This document shows positions 15,859-50,434 of a stretch of DNA of 64,000 nucleotides, piece by piece. Position numbers and translations under genes: made by a program. Position 1 is the first letter of the stretch; every line of letters begins with the position of its first letter. Under the pieces are notes generated by a model. It was given only the letters and a program-made list of their open reading frames with translations, ran no database searches and had not been told where the DNA came from. Source of the DNA: Blepharisma stoltei ATCC 30299 (Eukaryota > Protista > Ciliophora); assembly GCA_965603825.1 (NCBI GenBank), contig CBFDEM010000041.1, forward strand, positions 496,001 to 560,000, written 5' to 3'.

Positions 15859-16953
15859 ATGGGATCATTTTGTTCTTGCTTACGAGAATACAAACTCAAC
15901 GACCAACAAATGTTCATCCAGAAGGAAACTTCTAATCTCAGAGCCCAGCTATTTCAAACTCCACTCGTATTGACATCAGAGAATTCTTACGATCCTTTTG
16001 ATACCTCAAATTTAGTTACATTGCAATCTATATGTCGTGGATTTATTGATAGAAAAAATACTTTGACCCTCATGAACAATAAAGTGCGTGAGGTCAAAAT
16101 TGAGTCTGGCCACTTATCAGTCCCAAGGACAAGCATTAAAGAAATTGAAGGAGAAATCCCGAACTATTTAAACGAGACCACAGCAGGCATAATTAAGCGA
16201 CTAGAACCCTTTTTCTATGATATTAATGATGCAGACAGCCGAAATGTGAAGCATGGCCCTGTTAAAATGGAAACTGGAGCTATTTATATAGGAGAATGGA
16301 ATGATAAGCTAGAAAGAAATGGACGAGGAGTCCAGTATTGAGCTGATGGTTCAAAATATGAAGGATACTGAAAAAATGACCGAGCAAATGGCAGAGGAAG
16401 GCTGGTGCATGGAGATGGAGACATTTATGACGGAGAATGAGTCAGCGATAAAGCTCATGGATACGGAGTTTACATCCATTCTGATGGAGCTCAATATGAT
16501 GGGTTTTGACAGGACGACAAACAGCATGGCCATGGCGTCGAAAAATGGCCTGATGGCTCCTTATATGAAGGAAGCTATCATCAAGGCAAAAAGCATGGGA
16601 CAGGGACTTTTATATGAGCCGATAAAAGTAAATATGAAGGTGAATTCCGAGATAACAGCTTAGAGGGAAAAGGAGCTTATATATGAAGCGATAAAAGGAG
16701 ATATGAAGGAGAATGAAAAAATAGCAAAATGAACGGAAAAGGCATTTTTATTTGACCTGATGGCAGAAGATACATAGGAGAATATTTAAACGACAAAAAG
16801 CACGGACAAGGAGTCTTTATATGACCTGATGGGAAAAAATATGAAGGAGCTTGGAAAAAAGGGAAGCAGCATGGACATGGAGTGTTTTTTACAGCTAAAG
16901 GAGAAAAAATAGAAGGGGAATGGAAAGAAGGTAAAAGAATTGATAAAATGTAA
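15859..16953 (+). CDS. MORN-repeat protein with N-terminal acylation and IQ-like motifs
   Basis: Nine in-frame TGA fall on MORN Trp positions (YEGY[W]KND, YEGE[W]K, FI[W]PDG); ends TAA 16951-16953. Confidence 0.93.
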
Positions 16954-16972
16954 ATGTAAATTATTTTATAAA

Positions 16973-19900
16973 TTATCCCCATGAAGATTGGTTTGGTTTG
17001 GAATCCCAAGAGGAAGAAGTTGAAGAAGGCTGTGGAGCTTCACCCCAGGAGGATTGAGACGCAGGAGGATTTGCAGGTGTGTCTGACCAGCTTGTGGTTT
17101 GAGCAGCTTGAGTTTCTGAGCTTCCCCACCCACTGCTTGGAGGATTAGATGATGGCTTTGTAGCTCCAGAGTCTCCCCATCCAGTTGAACTGCTTGAAGT
17201 TGTATTAGAAGCTTGAGGTTCTCCCCAGCCTGTAGAGCTAGCTGCATTTGAAGTTCCAGATTCTCCCCATCCACCAGAGCTACTATTTGTAGTAGAGCTT
17301 GATCCTCCCCATCCTCCTGAACTGTTACTAGTTGTAGCTGAAGATCCAGAATCTCCCCAGCCAATTGAGGCATTGTTTGTGGTCGAAGAGCCAGAGTCTC
17401 CCCATCCAGTTGATGCGCTACTTGTGGAGCTCTCTCCCCATCCTGAAGAAGAGTTTGAGCTGTCTCCCCATCCTCCACTATTTCCTCCATCAGAGCTTCC
17501 CCATCCTCCACTTGATTCGCCTCCTCTTTCTTCTCCTGAGCCTCTTCTTCCTCTTCCACGACCTCTCCCACGGCCTCTTCCTTCATCTGGGTTAGGACAT
17601 TCTCTTGACATATGGCCTTCTTGTCCACATTTAAAGCAAGCTTTTGGCTTATTCTCGCCAGGATTAGGACATTCTTTTGACATGTGGCCTTCTTGCCCAC
17701 ATTTAAAGCAGGCTTTTGGCTTGCTTTCTCCAGGGTTAGGGCAATCTTTAGACATATGTCCTTCTTGGCCGCATTTGAAGCACCCTTTTGGCTTTTTGTT
17801 AGCATTTTCCCCAGGGTTTGGGCATTCTTTTGACATGTGCCCTTCTTGGCCGCATTTAAAGCAGCCTCTTCCTCGTCCACGTCCTCCTCTTCCACCTCTT
17901 TCAGCAGAGTCAATTTTGTCTCAATCAGTTTCAGGCACAGGAGGAGCTGGCATAGTCCATGAGTTTTGGACTTCTTCGCCCCAGCCTACTTTCGGCTTTG
18001 CAGCTTTTTCAGCTTCTTCAGTTTTTTTCTCTTCAGTTCCCCATTTTTCAAAGTTTTTGGTAAGTTCCCAGTCATCAGCTCTGGGGGTTTTGGTAAGGTC
18101 TTGTCCGCCAGCCCATTCTTGAGCGCCGATATGAGGGGTTTTATCAAATGGGGTAGCATCGCCATAGCCTGGAGTTTTATTAGGTCTTTGTGGTGTCATA
18201 GGGGCTGTGTTTTCATTAGACTCTTTAAGAACTGGCTGTTTAAGCTGCTCAGCTGCTTTTCCAGGGATTGCCAGATAATTGGTAGTGTCTATCATAGGAG
18301 CTTTAGAACGAGCGAGATGGTTTTTGTAGAGACGGTCAGAGTAATGTCGCTTGAACCAGCTAATAAGAAAGGTCATATTTGGATGGTAGGCTTCATGGAA
18401 AAATAAACCTTTTGGTTTAACCTTGATATATTCTCTAATTATTTCTTCTTTTGGAAGATAGGTTAAGATAAAAAATTGAGGATACTGAGGAGAGACACAG
18501 AAATAGTAAGGAATTGTGGTAGGTTTTGCCTTTTTTTCTTGAGTTAGAAGGTTTTCTAAGAACTTCATGCTACCAGATGTGATGTCTTTGAATTTCGGAT
18601 GTGAAATAGACTCTTTTACAATTTTTGCACATGGAGCAATATACCTGTCAGCTATTTCTTGTAAGGACTCATAGGTGTCTTGTCCAATCTTAAACCTCGT
18701 TCCCAACATATTTCCAGCTGGCTTTCCTTCTTCTGCAATATCCAGATGTGCATATAAAAAGTCATAAAACTTCCAAGTGCATGTCAAATGGTCCATTCCT
18801 CTACTGCTCGGCCTGAACACATAGTCTCCTATATCTTTATTGTATAATTCATCACAAGCAGACTTATAGCCAATATTTTTATATTTTGGATGATTCACGA
18901 CCCTTGGGACATATTTTTGTCCCACAACTTGCTCGTCTTCTTTAACTCCTCGTTCAGTCCAGTCACTGTCATCTTGTATAAAGGCATCATCAAGATTTAA
19001 ATGAATATATTTCCCATGGTTTAGCACGTCTTCAGGCAATAAGCTGAGCTTTACTTTGAAAAGCAGCTCTTTAGGAGTCTTTAGCCTTGATGATACTTCT
19101 ACGACTCTTGCAGTCAGTTTTTTGCCTTTATAAAACACTTCATTTATCTCTTCTTCTGTTGGAGTCTTTCCTTCTATAATGTTAGCAATTTCAACTTCGG
19201 CTTCTAATTCACATTCTAGCATACATCTTAGCACCTGCCTCTGAGGCTCAAACCCAATAACCATAGCTTGCACGATACTGCCTTTTTTAAGGGTTTGTCT
19301 TGTTTCTTTAGTAGTCAGGTAAAATAAATCATCAGTTGGTGGCTCACTATAGCCTCTTTTTGGATTAGCAAAAGGCGTGGTCAGTTCAGCTACAATAAAC
19401 TCTAAGATTTCTTTTTGGTTCATTTTGCCACGGTCAGCTTGGAGTTTTGCATAGACGTCAAGATCAAGTTCTCTCATCTTGTGGGGAACCAGCATTATTT
19501 CTTGGATTAAATTTTCTTCTTTAATTCTTTCGTCACTGAGAGCTGATTTTGAAACAATTTTGGCGAGCTCATAGTTTTCTGGGTGAATACGGGTACAATC
19601 TAGAGGCTCAGTTTCGCCCTCTTCAAATGGAATTTTTATAAATGCGCAGCAGTTTTCGTAGATTCGCTTGGGTAAAATGCATTTCCCAATTATTTGGGCT
19701 CTCATAGCAAGTTTTTCTTTGCAGCGGTATTTGATTCCTTCAAGAAGATCATAAGCTCTTACTGGGCCAAGACCTGGAATAAATGATAGAGGACCTTGTA
19801 GATGAGGCTTATTAATGATTTGGTTTACATTGATTCCATACTGTGAGCATGCGTCAACAGCCACCATTTCCATCCCTATAAGTCTTTTAGACTCATTAAC

Positions 19901-22216
19901 TAAGGACTGTAAATGATGCAGGTTTAAATTTTTTATCTGTAGCTCATTAGGATCATTCCACAGTCCAAGAGTTTCTGCGCGAGGGTTTTGAATGAATCTT
20001 CCTAGTGAAATCGCCATTTTTGTTAGGTTATTGTAGGTTTCACACAGTTTTTTAGACCTTTCTGAGGTTGCAAATAGAAGAGGGATCATTGTATCTTCCA
20101 TAGCGAGGAATGGGGCCTTTGAAAATAGCTGAGCTCTGTCTACATCAAAGCCAATTTCTGTCTCATTAAATGTATCAATTGTTAAGTTTTCTAGCAAGGT
20201 TCCTATAGATTTTCGTAGGTTTAAGCTTTGCAAACAGTTAGCGCCTATTACGACTACATGTGGTTGGTGTTCAAGAAGAAGTCTGATGATTTGTTTCTTT
20301 TCTGATATGTAGCGGGCTTTGTCACTTTCATGCAAAAATTCCACTTTTCTAATATTTAAGGTCGAAAAACTAGCGATTTCAGCGACATCTCCATTAGGTT
20401 TTAGTACAACCACAGCAGTTTGCCCAAACATCTTGGAGTCTGGATCAGTGACCAATGCACAGATTTTGGGCCTAGGGTCTTCTTCTCCTTCTGCTACAAA
20501 ACTTGGTCTATTTAAAATATCAAAAAACTTTCTCTGCACTTCTACCAGTACCCAGTCTTCACTTCTCGCTGTAAAAAGCTTCCAAAAAGACTGCTCGAAT
20601 TCCTGATACAGCTGGTTTAAGCTTTGCCTCAAAACTTCATATCGAAATTGGTTCCACTCCAGCTCAGCTTCTTCAGTCCCATCAGTTGTATAAAACGGTG
20701 TCAACATTGCCAAAATTTTATCATCTTTTGCATCATTCCAAGGCAATTTGAACTCAATTTTAATCAGTCCTAACGCCTCACTTTTTATTGCCAAAGCCCA
20801 CAGCTCAGATGTCCAAGTGCTTAAGCTTTTGCCTTCTGCAAAATTTTTAACCCTGTAGTATGGGCTGAATATATCTAAGGCAGTTTTCCCTTTTTCTGTT
20901 GGAGATGTGTAAATCCTGACGAATTTTTTGTATTCTTCTCTGACAAAGACACGAAAAGAGGGGAATCCTGATAGTTCAGATTTCATGAGGGTGCAAGCAT
21001 TGTTGATGACTTGGATTTCTTCATGGTAAACGTTGCTTAAAATTTCAAATGCAAGGTCTTGGGGTCGGGATTCAGGCAGCTGAGGGATGTAGATTTGTTG
21101 ACGAGCGTTTACGTTTTCAAGAAGCTGAATAGGTGTTAAGCCAGCTTTTGAAGTAAAATCGGTTAGCTTATTTCTGCGGGCTTTTACAATAGGGTTGTGA
21201 GATTTTGGATCAAATTCATAGACGTAAATTTTGATGTAGGCTTCCAAATCATTTATTTCAAGCAGGTACTCAGTAGTAGAATGGGAACTAAGCAAGTTGT
21301 TAATATAGTCAGGCAACGTGCCTGCTTCTGATAATAGCACTCTGTCCCCAGGGTTTAAAGTTTCCCCTCTTTCTAAAGCAATTGCATTTTGGCTTGCTGA
21401 TTTCAAGATTTTTGCCAAATTTTGTTTAGTGGAATACATGAACCCCCACTCTTTGTCCCAGTTATAAAGATCCCATAGCTCGCTGTCTGACTCTAGCTCA
21501 GGTCTAAGCATATTCATCCTATACCTGTATATAAAGGGCACTTCAAAATAGTCGACTCTATAATATTTTAAAAATGCACAGATTTTTTCTTTAATAGGGA
21601 GCGGATTTTCTGAAGGCTTTTTGTGCAGCAATTTCTGAAGAAGTCAGTCAGCCTCCAAGCTGAGCTCATGCTCACTAGGGTGTTCTCTATTTCTCAAAGT
21701 TATTTGAAGCCTTTCAGGGATGTCAAGATCTCTAATTGCCCTAGCTTCTGGAGTATTGAACTGCCCAACTATTTCATGAGGCTCATAGACAATGGGTTTT
21801 GACTCTTTTTCTTTTATTTCTGACTGATACCCAAAAATACTTGCAGCGAGTTCAACACTTTCCCCAAATTGTTCAGCCCCCTCTGCTTCGTCTAGTGACA
21901 TATCACTCTCAGAGTCTTCTTCTACAAGTTTCCTTATCTTGTGTGGAGCGTCTCTGCCAAAGAGCCCTTCGTCAAGTTCCTCACGGGATGTGGCCTTTAT
22001 TGTGAGTCCACGGCCTAAGTTTTCTTCAACGAGCTCTCGGTCTTCTTCATCAAGGTCACTGATTTTTTTGATTCTGCGACGTTTGACAGTTTTTTTGACC
22101 TTCTTAGGCTTAGCGATAATTTCTTCTTCTTCAGCTAGGTCGTCGGGGACGACAAAATCGTCATGCTGGTATTCGTCTTGAGAGCTTGATTCTTCGGAAC
22201 TTGAATCACCTGACAT
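16973..22216 (-). CDS. SPT6: Transcription elongation factor SPT6 with C-terminal CCHC zinc knuckles, RG repeats and GW/WG repeats (1747 aa)
   Basis: Acidic N-terminus (LDEEDRELVEEN, DIPERLQ), FEVPFI..YR, YqgF-like region (AISLGRFIQNP), HhH (LDCTRIHPENY), S1 and tandem SH2 (FRPSSRG.DHL..TWK; IPYYF). Three ORF pieces are in one frame, joined by TGA at 21644 and 17921. Confidence 0.93.
16976..17520 (-). repeat. Ser/Gly/Thr-rich GW/WG repeat region
   Basis: Ten GWG, two SWG, one SWS and one SWD motif spaced by roughly 9-16 residues. Confidence 0.9.
17597..17863 (-). repeat. Four tandem ~66-bp units encoding CX2CX4HX4C zinc knuckles
   Basis: CFKCGQEGHMS(K/R)(E/D)CPNP occurs four times. Confidence 0.92.
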
Positions 22217-28253: not shown

Positions 28254-31200
28254 ATGAAACATTTATATGTTTTCTTCATCATTCTAGCCCATGTGCAGTC
28301 GAGTAAATTTAATTTAGGCTCCTTCACAGCATTTGAAGTCACGTGCAAGAACTATCAAATAAGACAAGTAACAGATAACTATATGAGTGTTAAACCATAT
28401 ACTACTCTTCCTTCAGGCTCTCAATTTAAAGTTATATATCCTTCAGCTTTCACAAATTTACCTTCAGGCACTGTATCTTGCTCTTTTACAGGGATAACTG
28501 GCGGCCAATGCCAATTTTCAGGCAATACCTTGTATATTACCAATTTCACACCATCAAATTCTCCAACATTAACTTTTACCATTTCAAGTATCACAAACCC
28601 TACTTATGCAGGAATTACAGGAACTTTTCAGATTTATTCATTAAAATCAGATGGAACGATCCTTGACAGCACAACTTCAGGAGTTACACTAAATTTTACT
28701 CCCTTGAGCATGGGATCTGTTACTCTCTCCACTGAAAACCAAATAGTAGCAAGCCCTTGCAAGTGAACTTTTGATGCGACCATAAACAACAGTGTTGGCA
28801 GTAATGGCGCATTTGTAGTAAGCTTTCCAAGCTGAAATTCACAGCTAGGAGCAGCTGATACAGAAATTAGGTATTTCTGTGATGGAACGGTGACATGCAC
28901 AGGAGTTACAAGTAATTTTTAATTAGATCTGCCTTCATCACTTCCGTGCACGTGCTCAAAAGGCATAGCTACAATAACTTTGTCATCCGGTTTATCTGCT
29001 TCAAGGGTTGTTTTTACAATTTCACCAATTTTAAATCCTCCGAGCACTGACGTTTTTACAGGGATTATCGTTTCAACTTCATATAGTGGTGGACTAATTG
29101 AACAAAGCTCCAGTTTATCTGTTCAAATGACTAAATCAACGACTTTAGAAATCTATTCTATGTGAATTGATGACGAAAAAGTTGGTGCTCAAGCAATTTA
29201 TTATTTCTACACCAATTGCTCTGCACCTGTCATATCGACTTACAATATGCAAATTACTTTTCCGACTGGAGAAATTACAGCAACGACAGGCGTAACAACT
29301 GTAGAAGGTGTTATATGGGTTAACCGTAATAATCTCGTATATACGATTTCAAATGATGTTTTGACTCTAACAGGGCCTTTTACTCAATACATTGACTGAT
29401 ATAAGTCTATTGAATTTCAAGTATTGAGCTTATCAAACCCGCCATCCACAAAGCCAACTCAACAAATTCAGATTAAAATAAGTACATCAAACGGAGGAAC
29501 TGTTTGTTCAACAACATCAACAACTGGATATAGTATGACTGCGACTCCTTCGACGATTTCAAGCATATCAATTACACCATCAGACAAGACAATTGATGCA
29601 TCAACATCATATGCTTTTTCGTTCACTCCCGTCGTCTCCATTCTTTCCGGGAGTGTAATTACAATAACAGTGCCATCGCAAGTCTCAATCAGTGACAAAT
29701 CAGCAAGCTTTATTAGTTCTATCACTTCTGGACTAGACTCAAATGCCCAATATTCAGTAGCTTCAAATGCAATTACGATTTCAAGTGGATTTCCAAGTCA
29801 ACTAGCAGCCTCAAGCGTAATTTCTTTTTCTCTCTCAGATCTGACAAATCCACCGACAACAGCTACCTCATCAGTATTTACAATTACTATTTATTCAGAT
29901 TCAACTTTAGATTACTCAGAAGTTAATGATCAATCTGCAACAGTCACAGCTACATCTGGATCCCTTCAATCAGTTACTGTGACTCCTTCTTCTTATACAA
30001 CAGGTGATTCATCTACATCGTACACATTCCTCATTACTACTGGCCATAAAATTGTTGCTGGCGGTCAAGTTCTTATAAGTTTTCCATCAGATGTCTCTAT
30101 AGTGTTTTCAACCGCTACCTGCTCTAATCCTATTGGATTTAGTTCAGGCTACTCGTGTTCATTTACCTCATCAAGTGTCACTATAACTTATGGATTTCCA
30201 AGCGATTTTCCTCAAGGACAAATCGGGATAACTGTTTCAAGCATAACAAATCCTGGGACTACCAAGCCTACAAACACTTTTAGTGTAACTTCAAGCTACC
30301 AAGGATCCTTAATAGACACACTTACAAGCGGAATAACAATTGCTATGACCCAAGCACATTTATTAACGAGTGCTTCTTTTACCCTTGGAAGCACCACTGT
30401 GGGAGCTACTGCAGACTTAAAAGTTGCTATATCCCCTTATAACTCAATGGCCTCTGGGTCCTATGCTCTAATTACTCCGCCTTCCCAAATTGAATTTCCT
30501 TCATCTCCTACATGTGTATCTCAATCATCAAATCTGCAAAGCGTTTCTTGCAGCATCTCTGGAAGTGCTTTAAAAGCAGCTTTTACCTTAGCTTCAACTT
30601 CTACTTCAGAAATTGATTTTTCAATTAAAAACGTAGTTGGTCCACCGTCTACAAAGCCAACAGATACTTTTAGTATTTTTACTTATATATCAGGATATTC
30701 TATTGACTATATCAGCTCAGGGGTTTTTGTGAGTGCAAGCACTCCTGCAACTATGGTAGCTAGTGTAACTCCAACAAACACTGGAATAGCTCAGACAACT
30801 TCTTATACCTTTACGCTGAATACACTTCATACTGTAGCAAGTGGAGGATATGTGATCATTGTTTTTCCCTCTCAGGTGTCGTATTCAGGTATTACATGCA
30901 CTTATAACTCTCAGGCGGTAAGTTGTGAAGATAAAGGGAGCAATACTATATGGGTAAGTCCATTTGCAAGTGATTTTACTGCAGGAAAACTGACTTTCAT
31001 TGTAAATAATGTAGAAAATTATTCTCAGCCAGGAACTTCTGGGGCTTTTCAAATAACAACAATGACTTCTGATAACTATAAAATTGATTATAGTGGCTCT
31101 GCAGCAGTCACGTTCACCTGTGCGTTGCCTAAATACTCATATCAAAACAATTGCGTTGATAACTGTCCTGATGGAACTTATGCTAATGGCTCTGAATGTT

Positions 31201-34200
31201 CTAGCTGTGCAACTGGATGTGCTACTTGCTCTGGATCCTCAACTAATTGTTTGACGTGCTCACAAGGATATTACTTTTACCAAAATACTTGCGTCGACAC
31301 ATGTCCATCTGATATCACAATTGTGAGTGGAAGTAATTGCATAAGCTGTCAATCCCCTTGCAAAACTTGTTCTGATTCTATCACACATTGCAATTCATGC
31401 ACATCAGGGTATTATCTCTATAAAAATGCTTGCACCAAAACTTGCCCAACTGAAACTACTGTCATCGTTGGGAGTTCTTGTGTTGATTGTCAGTCGCCAT
31501 GCTCAACATGCTCTTTATCTATTACAAACTGCACTTCATGCACAACAAAATACTATCTTCACCAAAATAGCTGTTTAGATTCCTGCCCAAAAGAAACTAC
31601 AATCACCAATGGAACTGACTGTTTAGACTGCGAATCTCCTTGCTCAACCTGTTCAGAATCCATCACAAACTGCACGCTTTGCATTTCAGGATACTATTAT
31701 TATAAAAATACTTGCTTACAAACTTGTCCGACGAGCACTACAGTCCCAAGTGGAACCTCTTGTGTGGATTGTCAGTCTCCCTGCAGTACCTGCAGCTCTT
31801 CAATCACTTCTTGTACTTCTTGTATATCAGGCATGAATTTATATGGAAACCAATGTGTATCTACATGCCCAGATGGATATACTTCTATAAGCAGCATTTG
31901 TCAGCAATGCTCAACTAAGTGTAAAACATGCTCACAAACAATAGACACATGCACAAGCTGCTATTCTGGGGATCATTTAGATAATATTACATGCAGCCCA
32001 GACTATAGCACTACTTTATTATTAGATACAGTCCCATTTCCTGTTAGTACAAGTGGGACTGTTCTTTCAGGAATCAGTGCAGCTTCTAAAGTGCTTTTTC
32101 CATCTACTGGAATGACCTCAGGCACTCTTGCTATGTGAGGAGTAATTGAGCCAATCAGCTGAATTGGTGTAATAGGTGGCCTTAGTTCTTCAACGTCAAC
32201 TCATGGTAGAACTCTATTAGCAACTGATGAATTTCCTATATATGTCCCTTTTATTTTGCTTTTATCGTTTTTAGTGCTGCATGTTCTATTAAATTTGATT
32301 TTTTGTGTGATTTATTACCACAAAATTTTTAAAAAAGACGATGACCATAGAAATTGGCTTAGCCTTAACAGAATAGCAAAAATGGTTATTGTACCGCTTG
32401 CAGTGGTTTTTTCATTTAAATTCATTAGGATGCTTGATGTAAAGCTATTTAACTTGAAGTGCTTTACAGCAGAGTTTACTACAAAAGCAGCTTTTTATAA
32501 ACCACTTATATTATTTTCTTACGTAAGCTTACTGAGTGTTAATATTCCAGTTATTGGAACTTTATGCTACATTTTAATAGAATTTTCTACCGGGAACATT
32601 GTATATGTGCTTGCCCTTGATTCCTTAATATTCAATATTCTTGTGTTTATGATTACCATAATTGACATTTTCATGATGAATATGGAGCTCAACAAAGAAT
32701 TGAAGGTAATGAAAGATAGTCAAATGGCAACTGATAATAATTTTACTATAAATACAATGAGGGATGCATTTGCAGAAACTATGGAAGATCTAACATTAAC
32801 CAATTTTGCAAGTATTAAGATAAAAAATGCAGAATTAGAAAATATGGGAGATCTAGAGTATACTCAATTAGGAGGTATAATGATAAAAAATGCAAGTACA
32901 GAAGCCATGGCAAGAAATGCAAGCGCAGAAACTATGGTAAAAAATGCAAGTGCAGAAACTCTAGATGATATCATTTATGCTGAAGAAGCTAGCTTCAAGG
33001 TAAACTACGAGGATATGACTTCAGCAGAAAATTTGAATGAAAATGAAATTTTCATAGGCTACGGATCAGGTGCACAAGTTTGGACCATGAGTTTTCAACA
33101 TGAGTCTGAAACTAATGTTGGGCTTATCCCATTGCCTCCTGTAAAACCTGTATATCGTCCTCCACCTCCTAATATTCTCGAAACCATCCCTGAAGAAAGC
33201 GTTTTAGATCTCACGCTTTCAGAAATGGACATAGATGATAAAAGCATCATCAAAGTACCTCACATTCCTTCAGGAAAAAATATTAAAGTAAGGAAGTCTT
33301 TTGATGGGGCTGAAATCTTAGATTTAGAATCCATTGATGAAAATCCTCAGCTGGTTGACCAAAACCTGTATTCAATTGAGCGGGTAAACCCAAATGATGC
33401 AAGATTTGGGACTTTAAAAGAAATAGGCTCAAATAAGCTGATAACTGCTAAAAGAAACTTCGCAGGGGCAACAGTTGTTGACGTAGAAACTGAGGATGGA
33501 AAATGGCTTATTGGAAAACACGTCAGCAAAGAAGAAGATTTTGATTTCGCAAATGCAATTGAGGACCCTAAAAACCCAGAAGCTGTATTAGTCACCCATA
33601 AAAGAACTGGAGTGAAGTGCAGAGTTAAAAAAGGCTTCAAAGGACTGCCAAGACTTGATAAGAAAACAAATCTGCCTTTATTCAGAGAAAAAATAATTGA
33701 CACCTATGACATTGATTCAGTTTTTGTAGACCCTAAGAATTCTCATTACGCAAATCTAGTTTCTGATGGAAAAGAAATCAGGGCTAGGCGAAATTTTATA
33801 GGAGGAAACATTCTAGACGTCCTCACAGATGAAGAATTCGAAGCGTTAAAAGCAGAAATGGCTGAAAAAAATGCTAACCGAAAAAGAGAAAAAAAAGAAA
33901 AAGAACTGGCCAAGCAGCAGGAATATGAAGCAAGAATTAAAGAAGAGCAGGATAGAGAAAAAGAAAGAAAAGCTAAATGGCTTGAAAAGAAAGCAAAAGC
34001 AGAGCAAAAAGCTAAAGAAGAGGAAGAAGCGAGACTAGCTGAATTGCAAAAAGAAGAAAACGAAGTTATGATGTATGAAATACCAAATTTAGAGCAAAAT
34101 GTGGATACTCAGGCTAATACGGATACCCAGGCTTTTGTGTTTAATAAAGATGGATATGAAGAAGAGCCTCCAGCATTTACCACACCACAGAGCAAGATGT

Positions 34201-34490
34201 TTACAGAAACCTTTTTAAGCAATTCTTCGAAAAAAGCTGTCACTCCTGAAGGGATTTCAAGTTTAGAAGCAATTTATTTGCAGAGGCTTGAACCTGCAAA
34301 AAATAAAAATATTTCAAGACCGAAAAAGAAAGGGAAAAAGCTGAGACACTTCAGCCCATTCATGAACCCAACGACTGAAGATAGCTTGCTAAATCAAATA
34401 GAAGATTCAGTTTTGAACCAATTAAATATAGGGCAAGGCCCAGCTGATTTAGATTTTGAGTTGATAAGGAGAAAGACTGATAATGTTTAA
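28254..34490 (+). CDS. Large (2073 aa) membrane protein: signal peptide, Ser/Thr-rich beta repeats, furin-like CXXC repeats, several TM helices, cytoplasmic tail; one intron
   Basis: Four ORF pieces lie in one frame, joined by TGA codons and a 15-nt intron. Recurring I.NPP.T units, C.SPC.TCS.SIT.C.SC repeats and hydrophobic segments at about 32050-32670. Confidence 0.85.
28912..28926 (+). other. 15-nt spliceosomal intron
   Basis: gtaatttttaattag; contains in-frame TAA. Confidence 0.85.
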
Positions 34491-39734: not shown

Positions 39735-40823
39735 ATGGGAAGCCATAGCTTCAGATCAGATGATTGAGACCGTGAGATGTGCGTGAACATTTCTCACTTC
39801 AAGATCCATCATACTATAGGAAAGGGTTGCTTTTGCAGAGTGTGACTTGCTAAACACAAAACAACAAAACAGATATATGCGTTAAAAGAAATCTTAAAGT
39901 CAAGGGTCATAGCACAGAAACATGTAGGAGCAGCATTGAATGAGCAGACCATTTTAAGCACTATAAGACACCCTTTCCTTGTTAACATGCATCACGCATT
40001 TCAAAGTCGTGACTACCTTTTTCTTACCTTAGACTTAAAAACTGGAGGAGATCTGCGGTACCATCTCCTTAACCATACTTTTGTTGAGGAAGAAGCCAGA
40101 TTCATGATTTCTTGCGTGATACTTACATTGGAGTACTTACATTCAAATAAAATTATACACAGAGACTTAAAGCCTGAGAACTGACTTTTGGATGAAGACG
40201 GCTACGTTTGTTTAACTGACTTTGGCATCGCACGAAAACTCGAAAATGAGACTTGCAGAGAAATGTCTGGTACTCCAGGATACATGGCGCCTGAGGTTCT
40301 GTGTCAGGAGAGTCATACTTATACTGCAGACTGGTTTGCTATAGGTGTGATTTTATACGAAATCATCACTGGATTAAGACCTTACGTAGGAAAAAACATG
40401 AACCAAATAAAAAATCAAATCCTTGATAGACAAATACAACTGAAACATGAAAATCTATCTGGGGATTGGTCTAAGGAATGTGTTGACTTCGTAAATAAAC
40501 TGATCCAAAGAGAACCTCAAAACAGACTTGGTTTTAAAGGAGTAAGCGAAGTAAAAAACCATCCATGGGTGAAGAATGTTGAATGGGAAAAGCTGCTCAG
40601 AAAAGAAGTTGCTCCGGTTTTTAAACCACCCAAAGCTAATAATTTCAATCATAAATATGTTTCCGAGGAATGGAGAGATGGAATTGTCGCCAAGAGCGAC
40701 TACAACCAAGAGGCATTTAAAGGTTATTTCTATAATGAAATGTCTCAAGGTGATAAAGTAGAGTCAAATCATCATGATTTGCACTCAAGAAGAAAATATA
40801 ATCTTTGTCAATTATGGAAGTAA
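39735..40823 (+). CDS. AGC-family Ser/Thr kinase, array copy 1 (divergent)
   Basis: IGKGCF.RV[W], YALK, HRDLKPEN, DFG, SGTPGYMAPE; three in-frame TGA. Confidence 0.85.
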
Positions 40824-41333
40824 ATTATAAGCTAACGCTTTTAGAATTAAATAAAAATCGTCTTTAAATAGTTTTATTTGGCCTAAATCTTTCAGCTTGT
40901 CGTTGTATTTGACCACATGGGTTGATCAGTATGGGGTATGATGATTTAAAAAAAATCAAAAAATCTGAATAAGATTTCTAATAAATAATTTTAAATTAAA
41001 AAAAACAACTGCTCTACCAAAAAGAAATCAAAAAGAATCATTTCTTTAATTTTAAACCTAAATATCAGAAAAATATTTTTAAAAAGCTAATTTATCAGAA
41101 CCCTTTTCAACAGGAGATAAAATGTTTCGAGCACCAATAATTATCAATAGAGTATCCAACAAAATATTTTTTGGGATATTCAGAAACAGATTTAACTCTA
41201 AAGCTGTATTTAATTTTCATAAATTTTTAATTTTTGAACCCCAATAATTTTTGAAGCATATCTTTTAATTCTGCCTTCAGCCATATATACGGGTTATTAG
41301 GACCACATTAATAAATATCTGATAAGCTTCGAA

Positions 41334-42479
41334 ATGGGAAACTGCAGTTTGAAAACTAGCGATTATGACCCGACAATTTGTATAAATCCTAATCAATTTG
41401 AGTTCCACTATCCAATTGGAAAAGGTTCTTTCAGCAAGGTGTGAAAAGTCACCGATAAAGCAACAAAGCAAGTCTATGCTTTGAAAGAAATCCTTAAATC
41501 AAGGGTAGTAGCACAAAGGCATGCTAATTCTGCTCTTAACGAAAAAACCGTGTTAAGTATGCTAAGGCATCCTTTTATGATAAATATGCATCATGCTTTT
41601 CAAAACAAAAATTACCTTTTCCTCACAATGGACTGGAAGTCTGGTGGAGATCTCCGCTATCAAATGATAAAAAATAAATTTGTAGAAGAGGAAGCCAAAT
41701 TTTTGGTTTCATGCATCGTTCTTGTATTAGAATACATACACTCTCTTAGCGTAATTCATCGAGACGTAAAACCAGAAAATTTGCTCTTTGATGAGGAAGG
41801 GTATATTTATCTCGCAGATTTTGGAGAAGCCAAAATATGGGATAAAGAGATGCCTCATGATATGTCAGGAACCCCTGGATATATGGCGCCTGAAGTAGCC
41901 TTTCAGCAGGATTATTCATATACCGCTGACTGGTTTGCGGTGGGTGTAATTTTATATGAAATTATTACAGGATCAAGGCCATATTCAGGAAAAACTTTAA
42001 ATGAAGTTAAAGATAAAATTTTAGAAGGCCAATCACATTTAAACGTCGAGAACTTATCAACTCCTTGGTCAAAGGAATGTGAAGATTTTGTAAATAAATT
42101 AATTCAAGTAAGCCCACAAAACAGACTGGGATTCAAAGGAATTGACGAAATAAGAAATCATCCATGACTGAAGTATATAGAATGGGATAGATTGTATAGA
42201 AAAGAAATTATCCCAAGCTTCAAGCCGAAGAAAGGAAATAATTTTAATTCACATTATGTAAATGAAGACTGGAAAGATGGAATTACACCCAAGTGCAATT
42301 TTAATCAAGATATATTTTTAGGCTACTTTTATATGGAGTTGCCTCAAAATACTGATTCAACTAACACAAAAGTCTATGCAAAAAGGAAAAACTCCTTTTG
42401 CTTGCCAACAATTCATTCAGGAGATACAATTAATCAAAAAATGCATGAACGAGGAAAAAGCGAATTTCGTGCTTCATAA
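41334..42479 (+). CDS. AGC-family Ser/Thr kinase, array copy 2
   Basis: MGNC start. TGA at KV[W]KV and NHP[W], where paralogues have TGG. Confidence 0.9.
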
Positions 42480-43263
42480 CTAGGTTAATGTATTTAAATG
42501 TAAAAAATTCGTCTCTATAGCTTAAAAATAATTCTAGACATTCTACTAAATTAAGTCGACGTCACCAATTTATTTTTCAATTTAAGGCTTTCATGGGCAA
42601 TTTAATGATAAAATCTGTGATTAATTTTAAAAGATAAAAAGTTACAATAATATCTTATTCGCTATCTATAAAGTTTTTATTATATTAAAATATCTTATGT
42701 TAATCACCTTGGTTGAAAATATGCAAAACTAAATAAAAATTGTATATAATTTTGTTGATCTATGAAAATAAAGTTATAAGGCAATGATTTGGAAATGTAA
42801 TGCAAAGTCTTTCTTTTGATTATTAATTTTTAGCTAACTTGTATTTAATATTTCTTTTGAGTTTGAAGAGCTGGGGAAAAATTAAAAGGTCATAATAAAA
42901 AATCTGGCCGATAGAATTATATAAAAGAATAAGCTTCTCTGCTCACTAGAAATAATAAATTATTATTCTAATTAACTTCAACTGAAAATATTCCCTCACA
43001 TATTTTTGAATACCCATATTTTCTAAATAATCTGTTTCAAAATCGATATAAATGTTTGGGTTAAGTTGCCTGAAACTAATTTTTCCACAGAAGATAGCTT
43101 AGAAGCTAGAAATTGGAAATTGAATGCAGTTAAGGTTTTGTTTTATATTTTCCAACTAAAAAATAACAATAACTAATTTTTTAAGTTAAAATTTATTTCA
43201 GGTGGTTAGCCATATACTTGGAGATTTCTTGCCACATTTATAAACATAAACATCCGACCTGAC

Positions 43264-44403
43264 ATGGGAAACTGCATTCTGAAAACTGACGATTGTGACA
43301 CGACGATTTGCTTAAATCCTCATCAATTCGATTTCCATTATCCAATTGGTAGGAGTTCTTTTAGCAAAGTTTGGAAAGTCACCCAGAAAAATTCAAAGCA
43401 AGTGTATGCCTTGAAGGAAATCCTAAAATCAAGAGTAGTAGCACAAAGACACGTTAACTCTGCCCTAAATGAAAAAGAGATGCTAAGCGTTCTACGTCAT
43501 CCGTTTATGACTAATATGCACCATGCTTTCCAAAGCCATAGTCATCTTTATCTTACTATGGACTTCAAGCATGGAGGCGATTTACGGTACCAACTTCTAA
43601 AACATAAATTTGTTGAGGAAGAAGCCAAATTCATCATTTCATGCGTAATCATTGGCTTGGAATACGTTCATTCCAAACAAATCATCCATAGGGACTTAAA
43701 ACCAGAAAATTTGCTTTTTGACGAAAAAGGGTATGTATACTTATCAGATTTCGGGGAAGCAAAAATATGGGCCCAAGAGAACTCAAATGATGTATCAGGA
43801 ACTCCTGGATATATGGCTCCAGAAGTTCTTTGCCAACAAAACCACTCTTATCCTGCAGATTGGTTTGCAGTCGGTGTTATCTTACATGAAATCATCACGG
43901 GTTCCAGACCTTTCCCGGGAAAAAATTTAAAAGAATTTAAAGAAAAGATCTTAGAAAGCCAAGTGCAATTAAACGTAGACACTTTATCCACTTCTTGGTC
44001 TAAAGCATGCGAAGATTTTGTAAATCAATTAATCCAAACAAACCCTCAAAATAGACTTGGGTTTAGAGGGGTTGGTGAAATAAAAAATCATCCATGGCTA
44101 AAGGATGTAGAATGGGATAAAGTTCTTAAAAAAGAAGCTAATCCGAGATTTGTCCCTAAGAGAGGGAACAATTTCAATAGAGAGTATGTAAACGAAGACT
44201 GGAATGATGGGATTAAGCCAAAATGCGATTTTAAACAAGAGATGTTTGCAGGCTACTTTTATGTGGAGATGCCTCACTTTCAGAATGTAGATAATAACCA
44301 GAACACACATATGAGAAATAAAAGCTCTTTTGTTCAGCCTCATATTCAAAGTGGAAGTTCGAGCAATCAAAGGGCAAGAGGAAAAAGCTCTGTACGTGGA
44401 TAA
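43264..44403 (+). CDS. AGC-family Ser/Thr kinase, array copy 3
   Basis: Uninterrupted 379-aa ORF with HRD, DFG and APE motifs. Confidence 0.92.
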   Translation: MGNCILKTDDCDTTICLNPHQFDFHYPIGRSSFSKVWKVTQKNSKQVYALKEILKSRVVAQRHVNSALNEKEMLSVLRHPFMTNMHHAFQSHSHLYLTMDFKHGGDLRYQLLKHKFVEEEAKFIISCVIIGLEYVHSKQIIHRDLKPENLLFDEKGYVYLSDFGEAKIWAQENSNDVSGTPGYMAPEVLCQQNHSYPADWFAVGVILHEIITGSRPFPGKNLKEFKEKILESQVQLNVDTLSTSWSKACEDFVNQLIQTNPQNRLGFRGVGEIKNHPWLKDVEWDKVLKKEANPRFVPKRGNNFNREYVNEDWNDGIKPKCDFKQEMFAGYFYVEMPHFQNVDNNQNTHMRNKSSFVQPHIQSGSSSNQRARGKSSVRG

Positions 44404-44637
44404 AAAATTAAATTTAAAACTTTAATGTAAATATAATATCTTTAAAAATTGAACTGTTTCAAAAAATTATTTTTAAAAAATAAACAATATTTTCTTTTAT
44501 TTCCAATGTGTTAAAGTTCATTTGGTAGCCATTTTAGTTTAAAGAGAAAATGAAAATTGTTGAAAAGTTGTTAATTTATTCACCAAATAAACTAGCGATG
44601 CATGCCTATAATTTATGACTCGACAAATTTAAAACCC

Positions 44638-45080
44638 TTTAGAAGGTCAAGCACATTTAAACGTGGAGAACTTATCAACTCCTTGGTCAAAGGAATGTGA
44701 AGATTTTGTAAATAAATTAATTCAAGTAAGCCCACAAAACAGACTGGGATTCAAAGGAATTGGCGAAATAAAAAATCATCCATGACTAAAATATATAGAA
44801 TGGGATAGATTGTAGAAAAGAAATTATCCCGAGCTTCAAGCCGAAGAAAGGAAATAATTTTAATTCACATTATGTAAATGAAGATTGGAAAGATGGAATT
44901 ACACCCAAGTGCAATTTTAATCAAGATATATTTTTAGGCTAATTTTATAAAATACCGATTCAACTAACACAAAAGTCAATGCAAAAAGGAAAACTCCTTT
45001 TGCTTGCCACCAATTCATTTAGGAGATACAATTAACCAAAAATGCATGAACGAAGAAAAAGCGAATTTCGCTCTTCATAA
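44638..45080 (+). pseudogene. Truncated, decayed duplicate of the 3' part of kinase copy 2
   Basis: Near-identical to 42020-42479 but with a 2-nt deletion creating TAG, a TAC>TAA change and further deletions; no 5' half. Confidence 0.92.
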
Positions 45081-45379
45081 CAAGGTTAATGTATTTAAAT
45101 GTAAAAAATTATTTTCTATAGCATAAAAATAATTCTAGACATTCTACTAAATTAAGTCGACGTCATCAATCTATTCTTCAATTTAAGACTTTATAGAAAA
45201 TTTTAGTGATAAAATCTTTGATTAATTTCAAAAGATATAAAGTTGCAGTAATATCTTATTCGATATCTGCAAAGTTATTATTATACTAAAATATCTTATT
45301 TTAGTCAGTTTAGTTAAAAATATGCAAAACTAAATAAAAACGTATATAATTTTTTTGATCTCTGAAAGCAAATTTATAA

Positions 45380-45713
45380 AACACTGATTAGAAAATGCAA
45401 TACAAAGTTTTTCTTTTGTTATAAATTTTTAACTAAGCTGCCTTTAGTATTTCTTTGAGTTTGAAGAGTTGGGGAAAATTAAAAGGTCATAATAAAAATA
45501 CTGGTCGATAGAATTATATAAAAGAGCAAACTTAACTACTCGCTAAACACTGATTAGAAAATGCAATACAAAGTCTTTCTTTTGATTATACATTTTTAAC
45601 TAAGCTGCCTTTAGTATTTCTTTTGAGTTTGAAGAGCTGGGGAAAATTAAAAGGTCATAATAAAAATACTGGTCGATAGAATTATATAAAAGAGCAAACT
45701 TAACTACTCGCTA
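45380..45713 (+). repeat. Direct tandem repeat, 2 x ~167 bp, intergenic
   Basis: aacactgattagaaaatgcaatacaaag...cttaactactcgcta occurs twice here and once in the paralogous spacer. Confidence 0.9.
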
Positions 45714-46017
45714 GAAATCATAAATTATTATTCTAATTAGTTTCAGCTGAAAATTTTCCCTCAAACATTTTTGAATACCCATATTTTACAAATAATCTGT
45801 TTCACAATCGATATAAATGTTTTGGCTAAGTTGTCTGAAACTAATTTTTCCAAAAAAGATAGTTTAGAAGCTATAAATTGGCAGTTAAAGCTTTGCTCTA
45901 TATTTTCCAACTAAAAAATAACAAGAACTAATTTTTTAAGTTAAAATCTATTTGGGTGGTTAGCCATATACTTGGACATTTCTATACCACATTTATAAAC
46001 ATAAACATCGACCTAAC

Positions 46018-47169
46018 ATGGGAAACTGCATACTGAAAACTGACGATTGTGACACGACGATTTGCTTAAATCCTCATCAATTCGATTTCCATTATCCAAT
46101 TGGTAGGAGCTCTTTTAGCAAAGTTTGGAAAGTCACCCAGAAAAATTCAAAGCAAGTGCTAGCTTTGAAGGAAATTCTAAAATCAAGAGTAGTAGCACAA
46201 AGACACGTTAACTCTACCCTAAATGAAAAAGAGATGCTAAGCATCTTACGTCATCCATTTATGACTAATATGCACCATGCTTTCCAAAACCATAGCCATC
46301 TTTATCTTACTATGGACTTCAAGCATGGAGGCGATTTACGGTACCAACTTCTAAAACATAAATTTGTTGAGGAAGAAGCCAAATTCATCATTTCATGCGT
46401 AATCATTGGCTTGGAATACGTTCATTCCAAACAAATCATCCATAGGGACTTAAAACCAGAAAATTTGCTTTTTGACGAAAAAGGGTATGCATATTTATCA
46501 GATTTCGGGGAAGCAAAAATATGGGCCCAAGAGAACTCAAATGATGTATCAGGAACTCCTGGATATATGGCTCCAGAAGTTCTTTGCCAGCAAAACCACT
46601 CTTATCCTGCAGATTGGTTTGCCGTCGGTGTTATCTTACATGAAATCATTACGGGTTCCAGACCTTTCCCAGGAAAAAATTTAAAAGAAGTTAAAGAAAA
46701 GATCTTAGAAAGTCAAGTGCAATTAAACGTAGACACTTTATCCACTTCTTGGTCTAAAGCATGCGAAGATTTTGTAAATCAATTAATCCAAACAAACCCT
46801 CAAAATAGACTTGGGTTTAGAGGGGTTGATGAAATAAAAAATCATCCATGGCTAAAGGATGTAGAATGGGATAAAGTTCTTAAAAAAGAAGCTAATCCGA
46901 GATTTGTCCCTAAGAGAGGGAACAATTTCAATAGAGAGTATGTAAGCAAAGACTGGAGTGATGGGATTAAGCCAAAATGCGATTTTAAACAAGAGATGTT
47001 TGCAGGCTACTTTTATGTGGAGATGCCTCACTCTCAGAATGTAGATAATAGCCAGAGCACAAATATGAGAAATAAAAGCTCTTTTGTTCAGCCTCATATT
47101 CAAAGTGGAAGTTCGAGCAATCAAAGGGCAAGAGGAAAAAGCTCTGTGCGTGTGGATAAAAATATTTAA
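46018..47169 (+). CDS. AGC-family Ser/Thr kinase, array copy 4 (recent duplicate of copy 3)
   Basis: Nearly identical to 43264-44403; a 2-nt indel alters the last residues. Confidence 0.92.
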   Translation: MGNCILKTDDCDTTICLNPHQFDFHYPIGRSSFSKVWKVTQKNSKQVLALKEILKSRVVAQRHVNSTLNEKEMLSILRHPFMTNMHHAFQNHSHLYLTMDFKHGGDLRYQLLKHKFVEEEAKFIISCVIIGLEYVHSKQIIHRDLKPENLLFDEKGYAYLSDFGEAKIWAQENSNDVSGTPGYMAPEVLCQQNHSYPADWFAVGVILHEIITGSRPFPGKNLKEVKEKILESQVQLNVDTLSTSWSKACEDFVNQLIQTNPQNRLGFRGVDEIKNHPWLKDVEWDKVLKKEANPRFVPKRGNNFNREYVSKDWSDGIKPKCDFKQEMFAGYFYVEMPHSQNVDNSQSTNMRNKSSFVQPHIQSGSSSNQRARGKSSVRVDKNI

Positions 47170-47792
47170 ATTTAAAACTTTAATGTAAATATAATATCTT
47201 TAAAAATTGAACTGTTTCAAAAAATTATTTTTAAAAAATAAACAATGTTTCCTTTTATTTTCCATGTGTTAAAGTTCATTTGGTAGCCATTTTAATTTAG
47301 AGAAAATGAAAATTGTTGAAAAGTTGTTAATTTATTCACCAAATAAACTAGGGATGCAATGCCTATAATTTATTACTAAGACTTATCATTTATAATTATT
47401 CCTCTTTTCTAAATATAGAACTTTTTCAAACAACACACTTAAATCTGTCTAAATTAAAAAATAATTGGAGATAATTATCTTAAAATTAAACTTTAGGATT
47501 CTTAATTACTATTAAGATTTTAGAAAATAATATCACCAATATCCTTATCACAAATGAGCTTCTTATGATACTTTTTCGCATAAATAGATATATTCTTAAA
47601 AAATCCAATTGTGAAAATAAGGTAAATTCCAAAAAATTATTGGATATTATAATTATAAGACTCTTTAATTTATACCTAACTTATTCATGTGCTTCTTTCT
47701 AATGTTCTAATCTCATGGCAAAAACACAACTGATTTTTGATTTCACCTGCTCGACTTCTATATACCAATAAACAATTACATCAACACCCAAA

Positions 47793-48896
47793 ATGGGAAA
47801 CTGTAGCATGAGATCTGACGATTACGATCCAGCAGTCTACTTAAATTCTCACCAATTCGAGTTCCATTATTTAATTGGCAGAGGAGGTTTTAGCAGAGTC
47901 TGGAGTGTTACTCACAAAAACACAAAGCAAAGTTACGCTTTAAAAGAAATTTTAAAATCAAGAGTCATCGCAAAAAGGCATGTTCACTCTGTAATTAATG
48001 AAAAAAGGCTTCTCAGCATTTTAAAACACCCTTTTATCGTTAATATGCATCATGCATTTCAGGATCGTGACTATCTTTACCTTACAATAGACTTGAAAAC
48101 AGGAGGGGATTTACGGTATCATTTCCAGAAACATACTTTTACTGAGGAAGATACCAAATTTTTGACTTCCTGCATAATTCTTGCATTAGAATATTTACAT
48201 TCAAATAAAATTATTCATAGAGATTTAAAGCCAGAAAATTTAATATTTGATGGAGAAGGATATATGCATATAACAGATTTCGGTATAGCCAGGGCTTGGG
48301 TAGAAGACAATTCGCATGAAGTATCAGGAACTCCTGGATATATGGCTCCTGAAGTTCTTTGTAAACAAAATCATACATATGCTGTAGATTGGTATGCATT
48401 AGGTGTGATATTATATGAAATTATTACTGGGCTAAGACCTTATTTGGGAGAAAACAGAAGTAAAATAAGAGAACAGATATTAGATAGACAAGTCCAGTTA
48501 AAAGCAAACAATTTAATAGGCGAATGGTCAGAGGAATGTGTGGATTTTGTAAATCAATTGATACAGAGAAGACCTCAAAATAGACTTGGATTTAATGGAA
48601 TCAATGAAGTGAAAAATCATCCGTGGGTAAGAAATGTGGAATGGGATAAATTGTTCAGAAAAGAAATCAAGCCGAGTTTTAAACCTCCAAAAGCAAAAAA
48701 TTTCAATCAAAAGTATGTGAATGAAGATTGGAAAGATGGAATTATCACAAATAGTGATTTTAGCCAGGAAATATTTCTGGGCTACTTTTATAATGAAATG
48801 CCAACAAATAATAAAGATGATCCAAACTATCGTAAGTGCCAAAGTGAAGGGAAAAAATATTTGCGCCAGACTTTGAATAAAAAGCAGGTATCTTAA
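47793..48896 (+). CDS. AGC-family Ser/Thr kinase, array copy 5
   Basis: MGNC, IGRGGFSRVW, HRDLKPEN, DFGIAR, SGTPGYMAPE. Confidence 0.93.
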   Translation: MGNCSMRSDDYDPAVYLNSHQFEFHYLIGRGGFSRVWSVTHKNTKQSYALKEILKSRVIAKRHVHSVINEKRLLSILKHPFIVNMHHAFQDRDYLYLTIDLKTGGDLRYHFQKHTFTEEDTKFLTSCIILALEYLHSNKIIHRDLKPENLIFDGEGYMHITDFGIARAWVEDNSHEVSGTPGYMAPEVLCKQNHTYAVDWYALGVILYEIITGLRPYLGENRSKIREQILDRQVQLKANNLIGEWSEECVDFVNQLIQRRPQNRLGFNGINEVKNHPWVRNVEWDKLFRKEIKPSFKPPKAKNFNQKYVNEDWKDGIITNSDFSQEIFLGYFYNEMPTNNKDDPNYRKCQSEGKKYLRQTLNKKQVS

Positions 48897-49336
48897 GATT
48901 ATGATTTTAATAATGATTAATTCGTTTATTTGGATAAATAATAATTTTAATGCAAAAGAAATTTTATAATTTCTTTGTAATGTGCCGTGTAGCATTCATT
49001 TAAAATATTGTGCTTGCGAATATTTCATTTTTGGTCAATCTCAATCACAAATTTTCTATAACTTTTAGCTATGCATTCATATTTATATAGTCATTTCGAA
49101 TTTAAAAACATAACGCAGCCCTATAAATCATAAAATTCCCAATTAAAAAATTAACTTATATATTATCATTTTTTTTTAGTTCACCTATACATTATAATGG
49201 CATAACTATAAACTCTACAATCACTTCTATATGAATTTTTCTGCTGATCTATGATTACAAAATACTAAATTTTACAAAAATAAAAAGTTTGCGGCCATTC
49301 TAATTTTCTTTTTACTAAATTAATATTTGCTATATA

Positions 49337-50434
49337 ATGGGAAACTGCAGCTTACATATTGACAATTTCGACCCTACAATCAGCATAGACTCCACCCAAT
49401 TTGAATTCCACAATCCAATTGGAAAAGGAGGCTTCAGCAAAGTATGAAAAGTCACACACAAGAAGACCAAGCAATCTTTTGCTTTAAAAGAGATGCTGAA
49501 ATCAAGGGTCCTCGCTAAGAGATCTGTTCACTCTGTAATGAACGAAAAAAGACTTCTCAGCATTTTAAAGCACCCTTTTATTGTGAACATGCATCACGCT
49601 TTTCAAGACCGAGATTTCCTTTATCTCACCATGGATCTCAAAGCCGGTGGAGATTTGAGATATCAATTAACAAAGCAAGCGTTTAATGAAGAGCAAGCAA
49701 AATTCATAATTGCCTGTTTAGTCACTGGTTTAGAATACCTGCACTCGAATAAAATTTTGCATAGGGATATCAAACCAGAAAATTTAGTTTTCGACAGCTT
49801 AGGATACTTGCATATTACTGACTTTGGAATAGCAAGAATTTGGATGGAAGATAACTCAGGGGATACGTCAGGAACCCCTGGGTATATGGCTCCGGAGGTT
49901 ATGTGCAGACAAAGCCACTCATATGTGGCTGACTGATATGCAGTAGGAGTTATACTCTACGAAATGATAGCTGGGGTTAGACCTTATCTTGGAAAAGATA
50001 GGAAAGAAATCAGAGACCAAATATTGTCAAAACAAGTACAACTTAAAAGAAGCGATATTCCTTCAACTTGGTCTCAAGAGGCGTTAAATTTTGCTAATCA
50101 TCTAATACAAAGAAAAGCCCAGAATAGGCTTGGTAATGGAGGGTATGAAGAAGTGAAAAATCACCCATGGTTGGCTGATGTGGAATGAGTCAAATTGTTT
50201 AGAAAAGAAATAATTCCAACTTTTCAGCCTAGCAATTCTGATAACTTTAATCTTAAGCACGCAAGTGAAGATTGAAATGATGGTATTGCTGTTAAGGCTG
50301 ATATTTGCCAAGATATTTTTATTGGGTATTTTTACAACGAGGCACCTCCTCCACCTCCACAAAATGAAAAAGAAGACCCAAACAGCCAAAAATCAAAGAG
50401 AAGGAAAAATTCATTTTTCAAGTTTATAAACTAA
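49337..50434 (+). CDS. AGC-family Ser/Thr kinase, array copy 6 (closest to consensus)
   Basis: MGNC, IGKGGFSKV[W], HRDIKPEN, DFGIARIW, DTSGTPGYMAPE; four TGA, each at a position that is Trp in paralogues. Confidence 0.92.

Follow-up and report, generated by a model that had tools for sequence, protein, structure and literature searches.

WG/GW tails on the transcription elongation factor SPT6 are already known in plants (PMC2910046, PMC10991848) and have been noted in Physarum (PMC9864664). The gene described here lies on a 64,000-nucleotide stretch of the genome of the ciliate Blepharisma stoltei ATCC 30299 (contig CBFDEM010000041.1, hereafter the window). It encodes an SPT6 in which the tandem SH2 domain is followed by arginine-glycine (RG) tracts, CCHC zinc knuckles and a GW tail. 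The protein resembles plant SPT6L (Arabidopsis At1g65440/GTB1), a full SPT6 whose tandem SH2 is followed by a disordered C-terminal WG/GW array, and the likeness extends to a tail-less paralogue in some genomes and to a tie, putative here, with small-RNA-guided chromatin work (PMC2910046, PMC11127964, PMC10991848). In contrast, CCHC knuckles were not found in the plant proteins retrieved, and the plant gene is an essential housekeeping copy, whereas the long-tail copies of Blepharisma are conjugation-induced. Moreover, the plant system works with RNA polymerase V (Pol V) and methylation, whereas RNA polymerase II (Pol II), DNA elimination and a putative PIWI-clade partner would be involved here. 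A second parallel is offered by plant SPT5L/KTF1 and SPT5, an elongation factor likewise duplicated into a hook-bearing specialised copy and a hook-less general one (PMC10991848). This is, however, another elongation factor, and its binding to AGO4 is proven, whereas Piwi binding is putative in the present case.

Among ciliates, CnjBp of Tetrahymena has zinc knuckles. Together with Wag1p and the Paramecium proteins Nowa1/2, it belongs to the conjugation-stage GW-repeat proteins acting in the selection of scan RNAs (scnRNAs) (PMC5666084); compared by description only, these proteins differ in being free-standing and without SPT6 domains. Spt5m/Spt4m in Paramecium and Spt6/Ema2 in Tetrahymena are cases in which non-coding transcription by Pol II has elongation machinery tied to a stage (PMC5416832, PMC10830130); neither a hook nor a knuckle tail was described for them. 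Tetrahymena SPT6 also differs in that cells need it for vegetative growth and control it by way of a SUMO ligase (PMC10830130). Non-plant SPT6s with WG/GW repeats are found in Physarum (PMC9864664) and in Pelomyxa schiedti (KAH3765056.1; 2 knuckles, an RG tract and 9 GW/WG), both amoebozoan and with shorter arrays; these tails are probably independent gains.

The initial annotation of the window knew of no such tail described in ciliates. In agreement with this, the literature search, which left most subscription journals outside its scope, did not bring up any account of a GW tail on a ciliate SPT6, of knuckles combined with GW repeats or of a link between such a tail and conjugation-specific expression. 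The knuckle annotation already exists in a supplement and in UniRef names, where it goes without comment. The text and supplementary information of the genome paper (PMC9942806) do not discuss SPT6, and the main text of a 2026 eukaryote-wide survey of elongation factors mentions neither CCHC, ciliates nor AGO hooks (PMC13289920). The gene is at odds with a published claim that no SPT6 outside plants has an AGO-hook (PMC10991848). The preferred reading, given a probability of about 0.5, is that it encodes a development-specific SPT6 that would tether Piwi-scnRNA complexes to transcripts still being made by Pol II, in convergence with plant SPT6L.

Gene model and the reading of UGA

With UGA read as Trp, positions 22216..16973 on the minus strand form one open reading frame (ORF) of 1747 aa with a TAA stop, in which introns were not seen. 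Profile and database searches were made on the stop-free pieces taken separately, UGA being read as Trp only in scripts. The features are located as follows:

16973..22216, minus strand: whole coding sequence (CDS), 1747 aa (ORF read, RNA contigs, annotation)
22007..22201, minus strand: SPT6 acidic N-terminal region, PF14632 (Pfam)
21644..21646, minus strand: TGA codon 191, read as Trp, separating PF14632 from the remaining SPT6 (ORF read, Pfam)
19025..21610, minus strand: SPT6 core with HTH_44, YqgF, HHH_7, HHH_9 and S1 (Pfam)
18344..18967, minus strand: tandem SH2, PF14633 (Pfam)
18068..18154, minus strand: TP-rich linear motif HIGxQEWAGG...TPRADDW (majority consensus of heterotrich tails, alignment A4)
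17921..17923, minus strand: TGA codon 1432, at the conserved Trp of a PxVPxT[ND]W motif (alignment, RNA contigs)
17864..17899, minus strand: first RG/RGG tract, aa1440-1451 (ORF read)
17597..17863, minus strand: four CCHC zinc knuckles, aa1452-1540 (ORF read, Pfam, PDB matches)
17540..17581, minus strand: second RG tract, aa1546-1559 (ORF read)
16976..17506, minus strand: Ser/Gly/Thr-rich GW tail with 10 GWG, 2 SWG and 14 Trp (ORF read, shuffles)
17087, minus strand: strain polymorphism, Trp1710 TGG to TGA (variants in two polymorphic runs)
16940..16972, minus strand: 33-nt 3' untranslated region (UTR) and poly(A) site (loose end of an RNA contig, run X1)

The frame holds just two TGA codons, at aa191 within the SPT6 part and at aa1432. 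It had been proposed from the letters alone that the SPT6 frame continues past 17921 through TGA=Trp, and the single ORF, the spanning RNA contigs and the homologues with Trp at this site bear this out. Two contigs of 4624 and 4627 nt, assembled from sequencing runs presumed to be RNA, match 16940-21551 and 16945-21571 throughout, with neither gaps nor changes. One of them ends in non-templated poly(A) at 16940, 33 nt past the TAA, and coverage is zero in the intergenic bin upstream of the gene. Polyadenylation near 17921, named beforehand as an outcome that would speak against the fusion, was not seen, poly(A) occurring only after the tail. A separate downstream gene or an intron at 17921 was rejected on the same ground and because the gene shows no joints or gaps.

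Alternatively, UGA 1432 could be a stop, so that the protein would end after the SH2 linker and the tail would be untranslated or a separate product. This is very improbable, though some ribosomes may terminate there: another UGA already lies upstream inside the SPT6 core, the mRNA extends 980 nt beyond codon 1432, and that codon is aligned to Trp in the paralogue and four other long-tail proteins. In addition, the paralogue and the Stentor orthologue have the whole architecture without a stop, and UGA=Trp is published for B. stoltei (PMC9942806). The reading of UGA as Trp in this gene is further supported by the strain allele at Trp1710, where a tail Trp swaps between TGG and TGA.

The gene was identified as BSTOLATCC_MAC16757 / Contig_46.g365, an entry of the expression table in Data S3 of the genome preprint (10.1101/2021.12.14.471607), because the CDS length (5244 nt), the domain set (SH2_2 plus zf-CCHC x4) and the neighbour lengths match; the flanking ORFs of 669, 2928, 4599 and 1248 nt have the lengths of Contig_46.g352, g359, g387 and g388. 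The earlier remark that the fusion is easily missed does not hold for the published annotation, which already contains it as a single CDS with these domains.

Tail architecture and its distribution

Pfam detects SPT6_acidic, HTH_44, YqgF, HHH_7, HHH_9, Spt6_S1 and SH2_2 (E 5.5e-58) in the separate pieces, so that acidic N-terminus, HtH, YqgF, HhH, S1 and tandem SH2 are present in SPT6 order. Homologue searches and trees show orthology with eukaryotic SPT6. Judged by these domains, the protein is a true SPT6 with all SPT6 domains intact. The SH2 is followed by a TP-rich linker of ~150 aa and then by four knuckles, which stand between two RG tracts; the GW tail of ~180 aa comes last. The TP-rich motif between SH2 and knuckles is kept in heterotrich SPT6 tails and might be targeted by a kinase or mediate binding.

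The knuckles, second RG tract and ten GWG motifs reported earlier were all recovered. The four zf-CCHC (E 8.6e-32) fit C-x2-C-x4-H-x4-C (PF00098) above the cut-off; their best PDB matches are nucleocapsids, the generic solved knuckles. A retroviral Gag origin was rejected, as the flanks are without a Gag/Pol ORF and orthologous tails occur across ciliates. Ten GWG fall within aa1571-1698, with two further SWG, and the last 187 aa contain 14 Trp spaced 9-17 aa apart in a composition of 32% Ser, 19% Gly and 10% Thr. Chance GW content was ruled out by shuffling, which gave 0.5 GWG on average and reached 10 in 0/20000 shuffles. Reiterated above chance in a Gly/Ser/Thr-rich, low-hydrophobic context, the motifs have the sequence character of an Argonaute hook. 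Free-standing relatives of the tail were not found in the B. stoltei genome by low-complexity searches, which are weak.

For the stop-free paralogue (P0001), an AlphaFold model built on a 20-row alignment gives a predicted local distance difference test (pLDDT) score of ~90 for the tandem SH2, 55-78 for the knuckles and <50 for the GW segments, which are thus predicted to be disordered. Evenly spaced Trp in a Ser/Gly-rich, predicted-disordered chain would also suit a Piwi-independent RNA-binding or condensate scaffold for development-specific Pol II, which could handle non-coding RNA or recruit helicases or decay factors. This is a possible though doubtful explanation and the main rival of Piwi tethering. 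In addition, Trp in GW contexts recruit CCR4-NOT and may promote the formation of condensates (PMC10991848), which would agree with it, whereas Gly flanks the Trp on both sides 20x more often than chance, the usual hook context.

The proposed survey of ciliate SPT6 C-termini found at least one knuckle after the SH2 in 68/96 SPT6 rows of the ciliate-containing clade, and knuckles with at least 8 GW/WG in 31/96. Among 143 other SPT6s, knuckles occur in one (Pelomyxa) and at least 8 GW/WG in 18, mostly plants. Most ciliate-clade rows are unnamed metagenome proteins placed by tree position, and the sample is thin in ciliates that read TAA/TAG as Gln. Knuckles are present in the named ciliates Stentor, Stylonychia (4 knuckles, few GW) and Nyctotherus (2). 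A group from rumen metagenomes combines one knuckle with ~9 WG, and Litonotus has neither knuckles nor a GW tail. The ciliate rows do not group with the plant rows, and the present gene groups with ciliate SPT6s, apart from plant SPT6L. On this sample, tails with knuckles and GW repeats are common among ciliate SPT6s rather than peculiar to B. stoltei. No SPT6 of Tetrahymena, Paramecium, Oxytricha or Euplotes is among the named protein-search matches. Tail loss in oligohymenophoreans rests on one figure legend, the description of Tetrahymena Spt6 naming only TEX-like and SH2 domains besides a low-complexity N-terminus (PMC10830130).

Three SPT6 genes (L025, L026, L027) lie on contigs with telomere-like ends. 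C4A3 repeats lie at the contig end of a tail-less SPT6 (P0085), and G4T4 at that of an SPT6 with 4 knuckles and 19 GW/WG (P0205), which groups with Nyctotherus. Another row (P0194), labelled archaeal in NCBI as part of a metagenome-assembled genome, falls inside the ciliate SPT6 clade and is probably a contaminating ciliate contig.

Paralogues, conjugation and the proposed role

The B. stoltei genome contains three SPT6 genes. The present gene has 4 knuckles and 14 GW/WG after the SH2; paralogue C33 (MAC12811; 1851 aa) has 6 knuckles, 23 GW/WG and no internal stop, and paralogue C53 (1539 aa; 4620-nt CDS) has 2 knuckles and 2 isolated WG. Identity between the gene and a B. stoltei paralogue is 60%. 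In an IQ-TREE tree of the SPT6 core, the gene joins C33 and Stentor SteCoe_8277 (9 knuckles, 11 GW/WG) with support 97/100, and C53 joins SteCoe_24471 (2 knuckles, no GW/WG) with support 98/97. On this tree, the split into long- and short-tail forms is older than the Blepharisma-Stentor divergence. Since most other clade rows have GW tails, loss of the GW array in the short-tail clade is the simpler reading, the clade base not being resolved in the tree.

Strain variants were taken from a table of 40 sites that may be incomplete. Among those listed, all 22 in the SPT6 core and all 6 in the knuckle region are synonymous, whereas 5 of the 10 changed codons in the GW tail alter the amino acid, all in spacers and with no Trp lost. 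Contig depth is higher in the polymorphic runs relative to a neighbouring gene, a poor measure that was not used as evidence. Retention of Trp while spacers vary supports the Piwi-tether reading, as does the conserved long-tail clade beside a GW-poor one. The tolerance of spacers to amino-acid changes is also compatible with the view that the induced paralogues are just extra SPT6 for heavy developmental transcription, the tail being an ancestral ciliate appendage, largely dispensable or redundant. Tail length and GW count do vary greatly, and some ciliate clades are without both. Against this view, which is judged unlikely, the induced clade has retained the GW array in both Blepharisma and Stentor, while the other clade has lost it in both, and the listed knuckle variants are all silent.

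Published RNA-seq puts the gene at 5-6 reads per kilobase per million (RPKM) before mating, at 108 after 6 h and at 387 after 26 h of conjugation, a 67.9-fold increase. C33 is induced 62.1-fold in the same data, and a Piwi gene 283-fold. The published top-100 list of induced genes stops at 69-fold (PMC9942806), so that the gene fell just outside it. The time course spans meiosis, the rise and selection of 24-nt 5'-U scnRNAs, and formation of the new macronucleus (PMC9942856). Expression is thus tied to sexual development, as in CnjB/Nowa1-type proteins. Among the expression rows covered, which reach down to 6.26-fold, there is no third SH2_2/HHH_7 row, though C53 matches both families; its induction is therefore probably below 6.3-fold. 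Both checks proposed earlier, of expression during conjugation and of a tail-less paralogue, accordingly favour a role in sexual development, the GW-poor C53 being present and probably not strongly induced.

Elongating Pol II is accompanied by SPT6, which uses its core and tandem SH2 for this; single-stranded RNA is bound by CCHC knuckles and by RG tracts, and GW arrays can bind Argonautes. In the preferred Piwi-tether reading, core and tandem SH2 would place the long-tail SPT6 on elongating Pol II, while knuckles and RG tracts would hold the nascent non-coding transcript as an RNA clamp. The Trp array would capture several Piwi-scnRNA complexes as a multivalent tether, raising their local concentration. 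The scnRNAs could then be matched to transcripts in the old and later the new macronucleus, for scanning and subsequently for marking of internal eliminated sequences, and the short-tail paralogue would serve ordinary transcription. The genome encodes nine Piwi-domain genes. In Tetrahymena, the GW proteins CnjBp and Wag1p act in scnRNA selection, and GW proteins are reported to bind the PIWI-clade Argonaute Twi1p (PMC5666084), a report that also speaks against a Piwi-independent tail. Furthermore, Spt6 chromatin loading in Tetrahymena is tied to long non-coding RNA transcription for scanning (PMC10830130).

Several observations weigh against Piwi tethering. The induced candidate Argonaute of Blepharisma (the one of nine examined) is PIWI-clade, where Trp pockets are variable (PMC12477606), which would suit a Piwi-independent scaffold. 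Arabidopsis SPT6L without its WG/GW tail keeps RNA-directed DNA methylation intact (PMC11127964), and the description of Tetrahymena Spt6 without such a tail implies that scanning can work without one. C53 expression is known only as absence from the rows covered. Finally, many transcription factors have paralogues induced at this stage, so that induction alone is unspecific; TBP, TAF1 and SPT5 have them too. The dispensable plant tail and the induced paralogues of TBP, TAF1 and SPT5 also fit with extra SPT6 for developmental transcription.

The knuckles nearest to those of the SPT6 tail in the genome are the C-terminal knuckles of two co-induced DEAD-box helicases, MAC17155 (288-fold) and MAC6689 (80-fold). 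Such a near-identical unit ending two co-induced helicases favours the scaffold explanation, and SPT6 tails and helicases may possibly share a module or a partner. By length and knuckle count, these entries match two loci, L008 (G000:C43, 631 aa) and L009 (G000:C16, 589 aa), respectively. In sequence, their C-terminal knuckles come very close to the last knuckle of the long-tail SPT6s, the L009 unit showing ~80% DNA identity over 150 nt, and both carry a short N-terminal WG/GW pair.

How scnRNAs are selected has been called elusive (PMC5666084). The gene is a testable candidate for bringing Piwi-scnRNA to nascent transcripts in a lineage with inducible conjugation, with the GW-poor paralogue as a natural control. 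More tentatively, scnRNA scanning might have been coupled to transcription already in the last common ancestor of ciliates, by an elongation factor of Pol II that carried both an RNA clamp and a Piwi hook; heterotrichs would keep it as a conjugation paralogue, and model ciliates would have lost the tail and use free GW proteins. In that case, a plant-type AGO-hook elongation factor would have originated independently and be used for DNA elimination.

Other features of the window

A convergent MORN-repeat gene (15859-16953, plus strand; 9 TGA read as Trp) has its end just 19 nt away from the SPT6 stop, and its last codons are overlapped by the SPT6 3' UTR (16940-16972, minus strand). Further along the plus strand lie a 1787-aa ORF under UGA=Trp (29127-34490) and six similar protein-kinase-like ORFs in tandem (39735-50434), each 362-383 aa long and most of them starting with MGNC.

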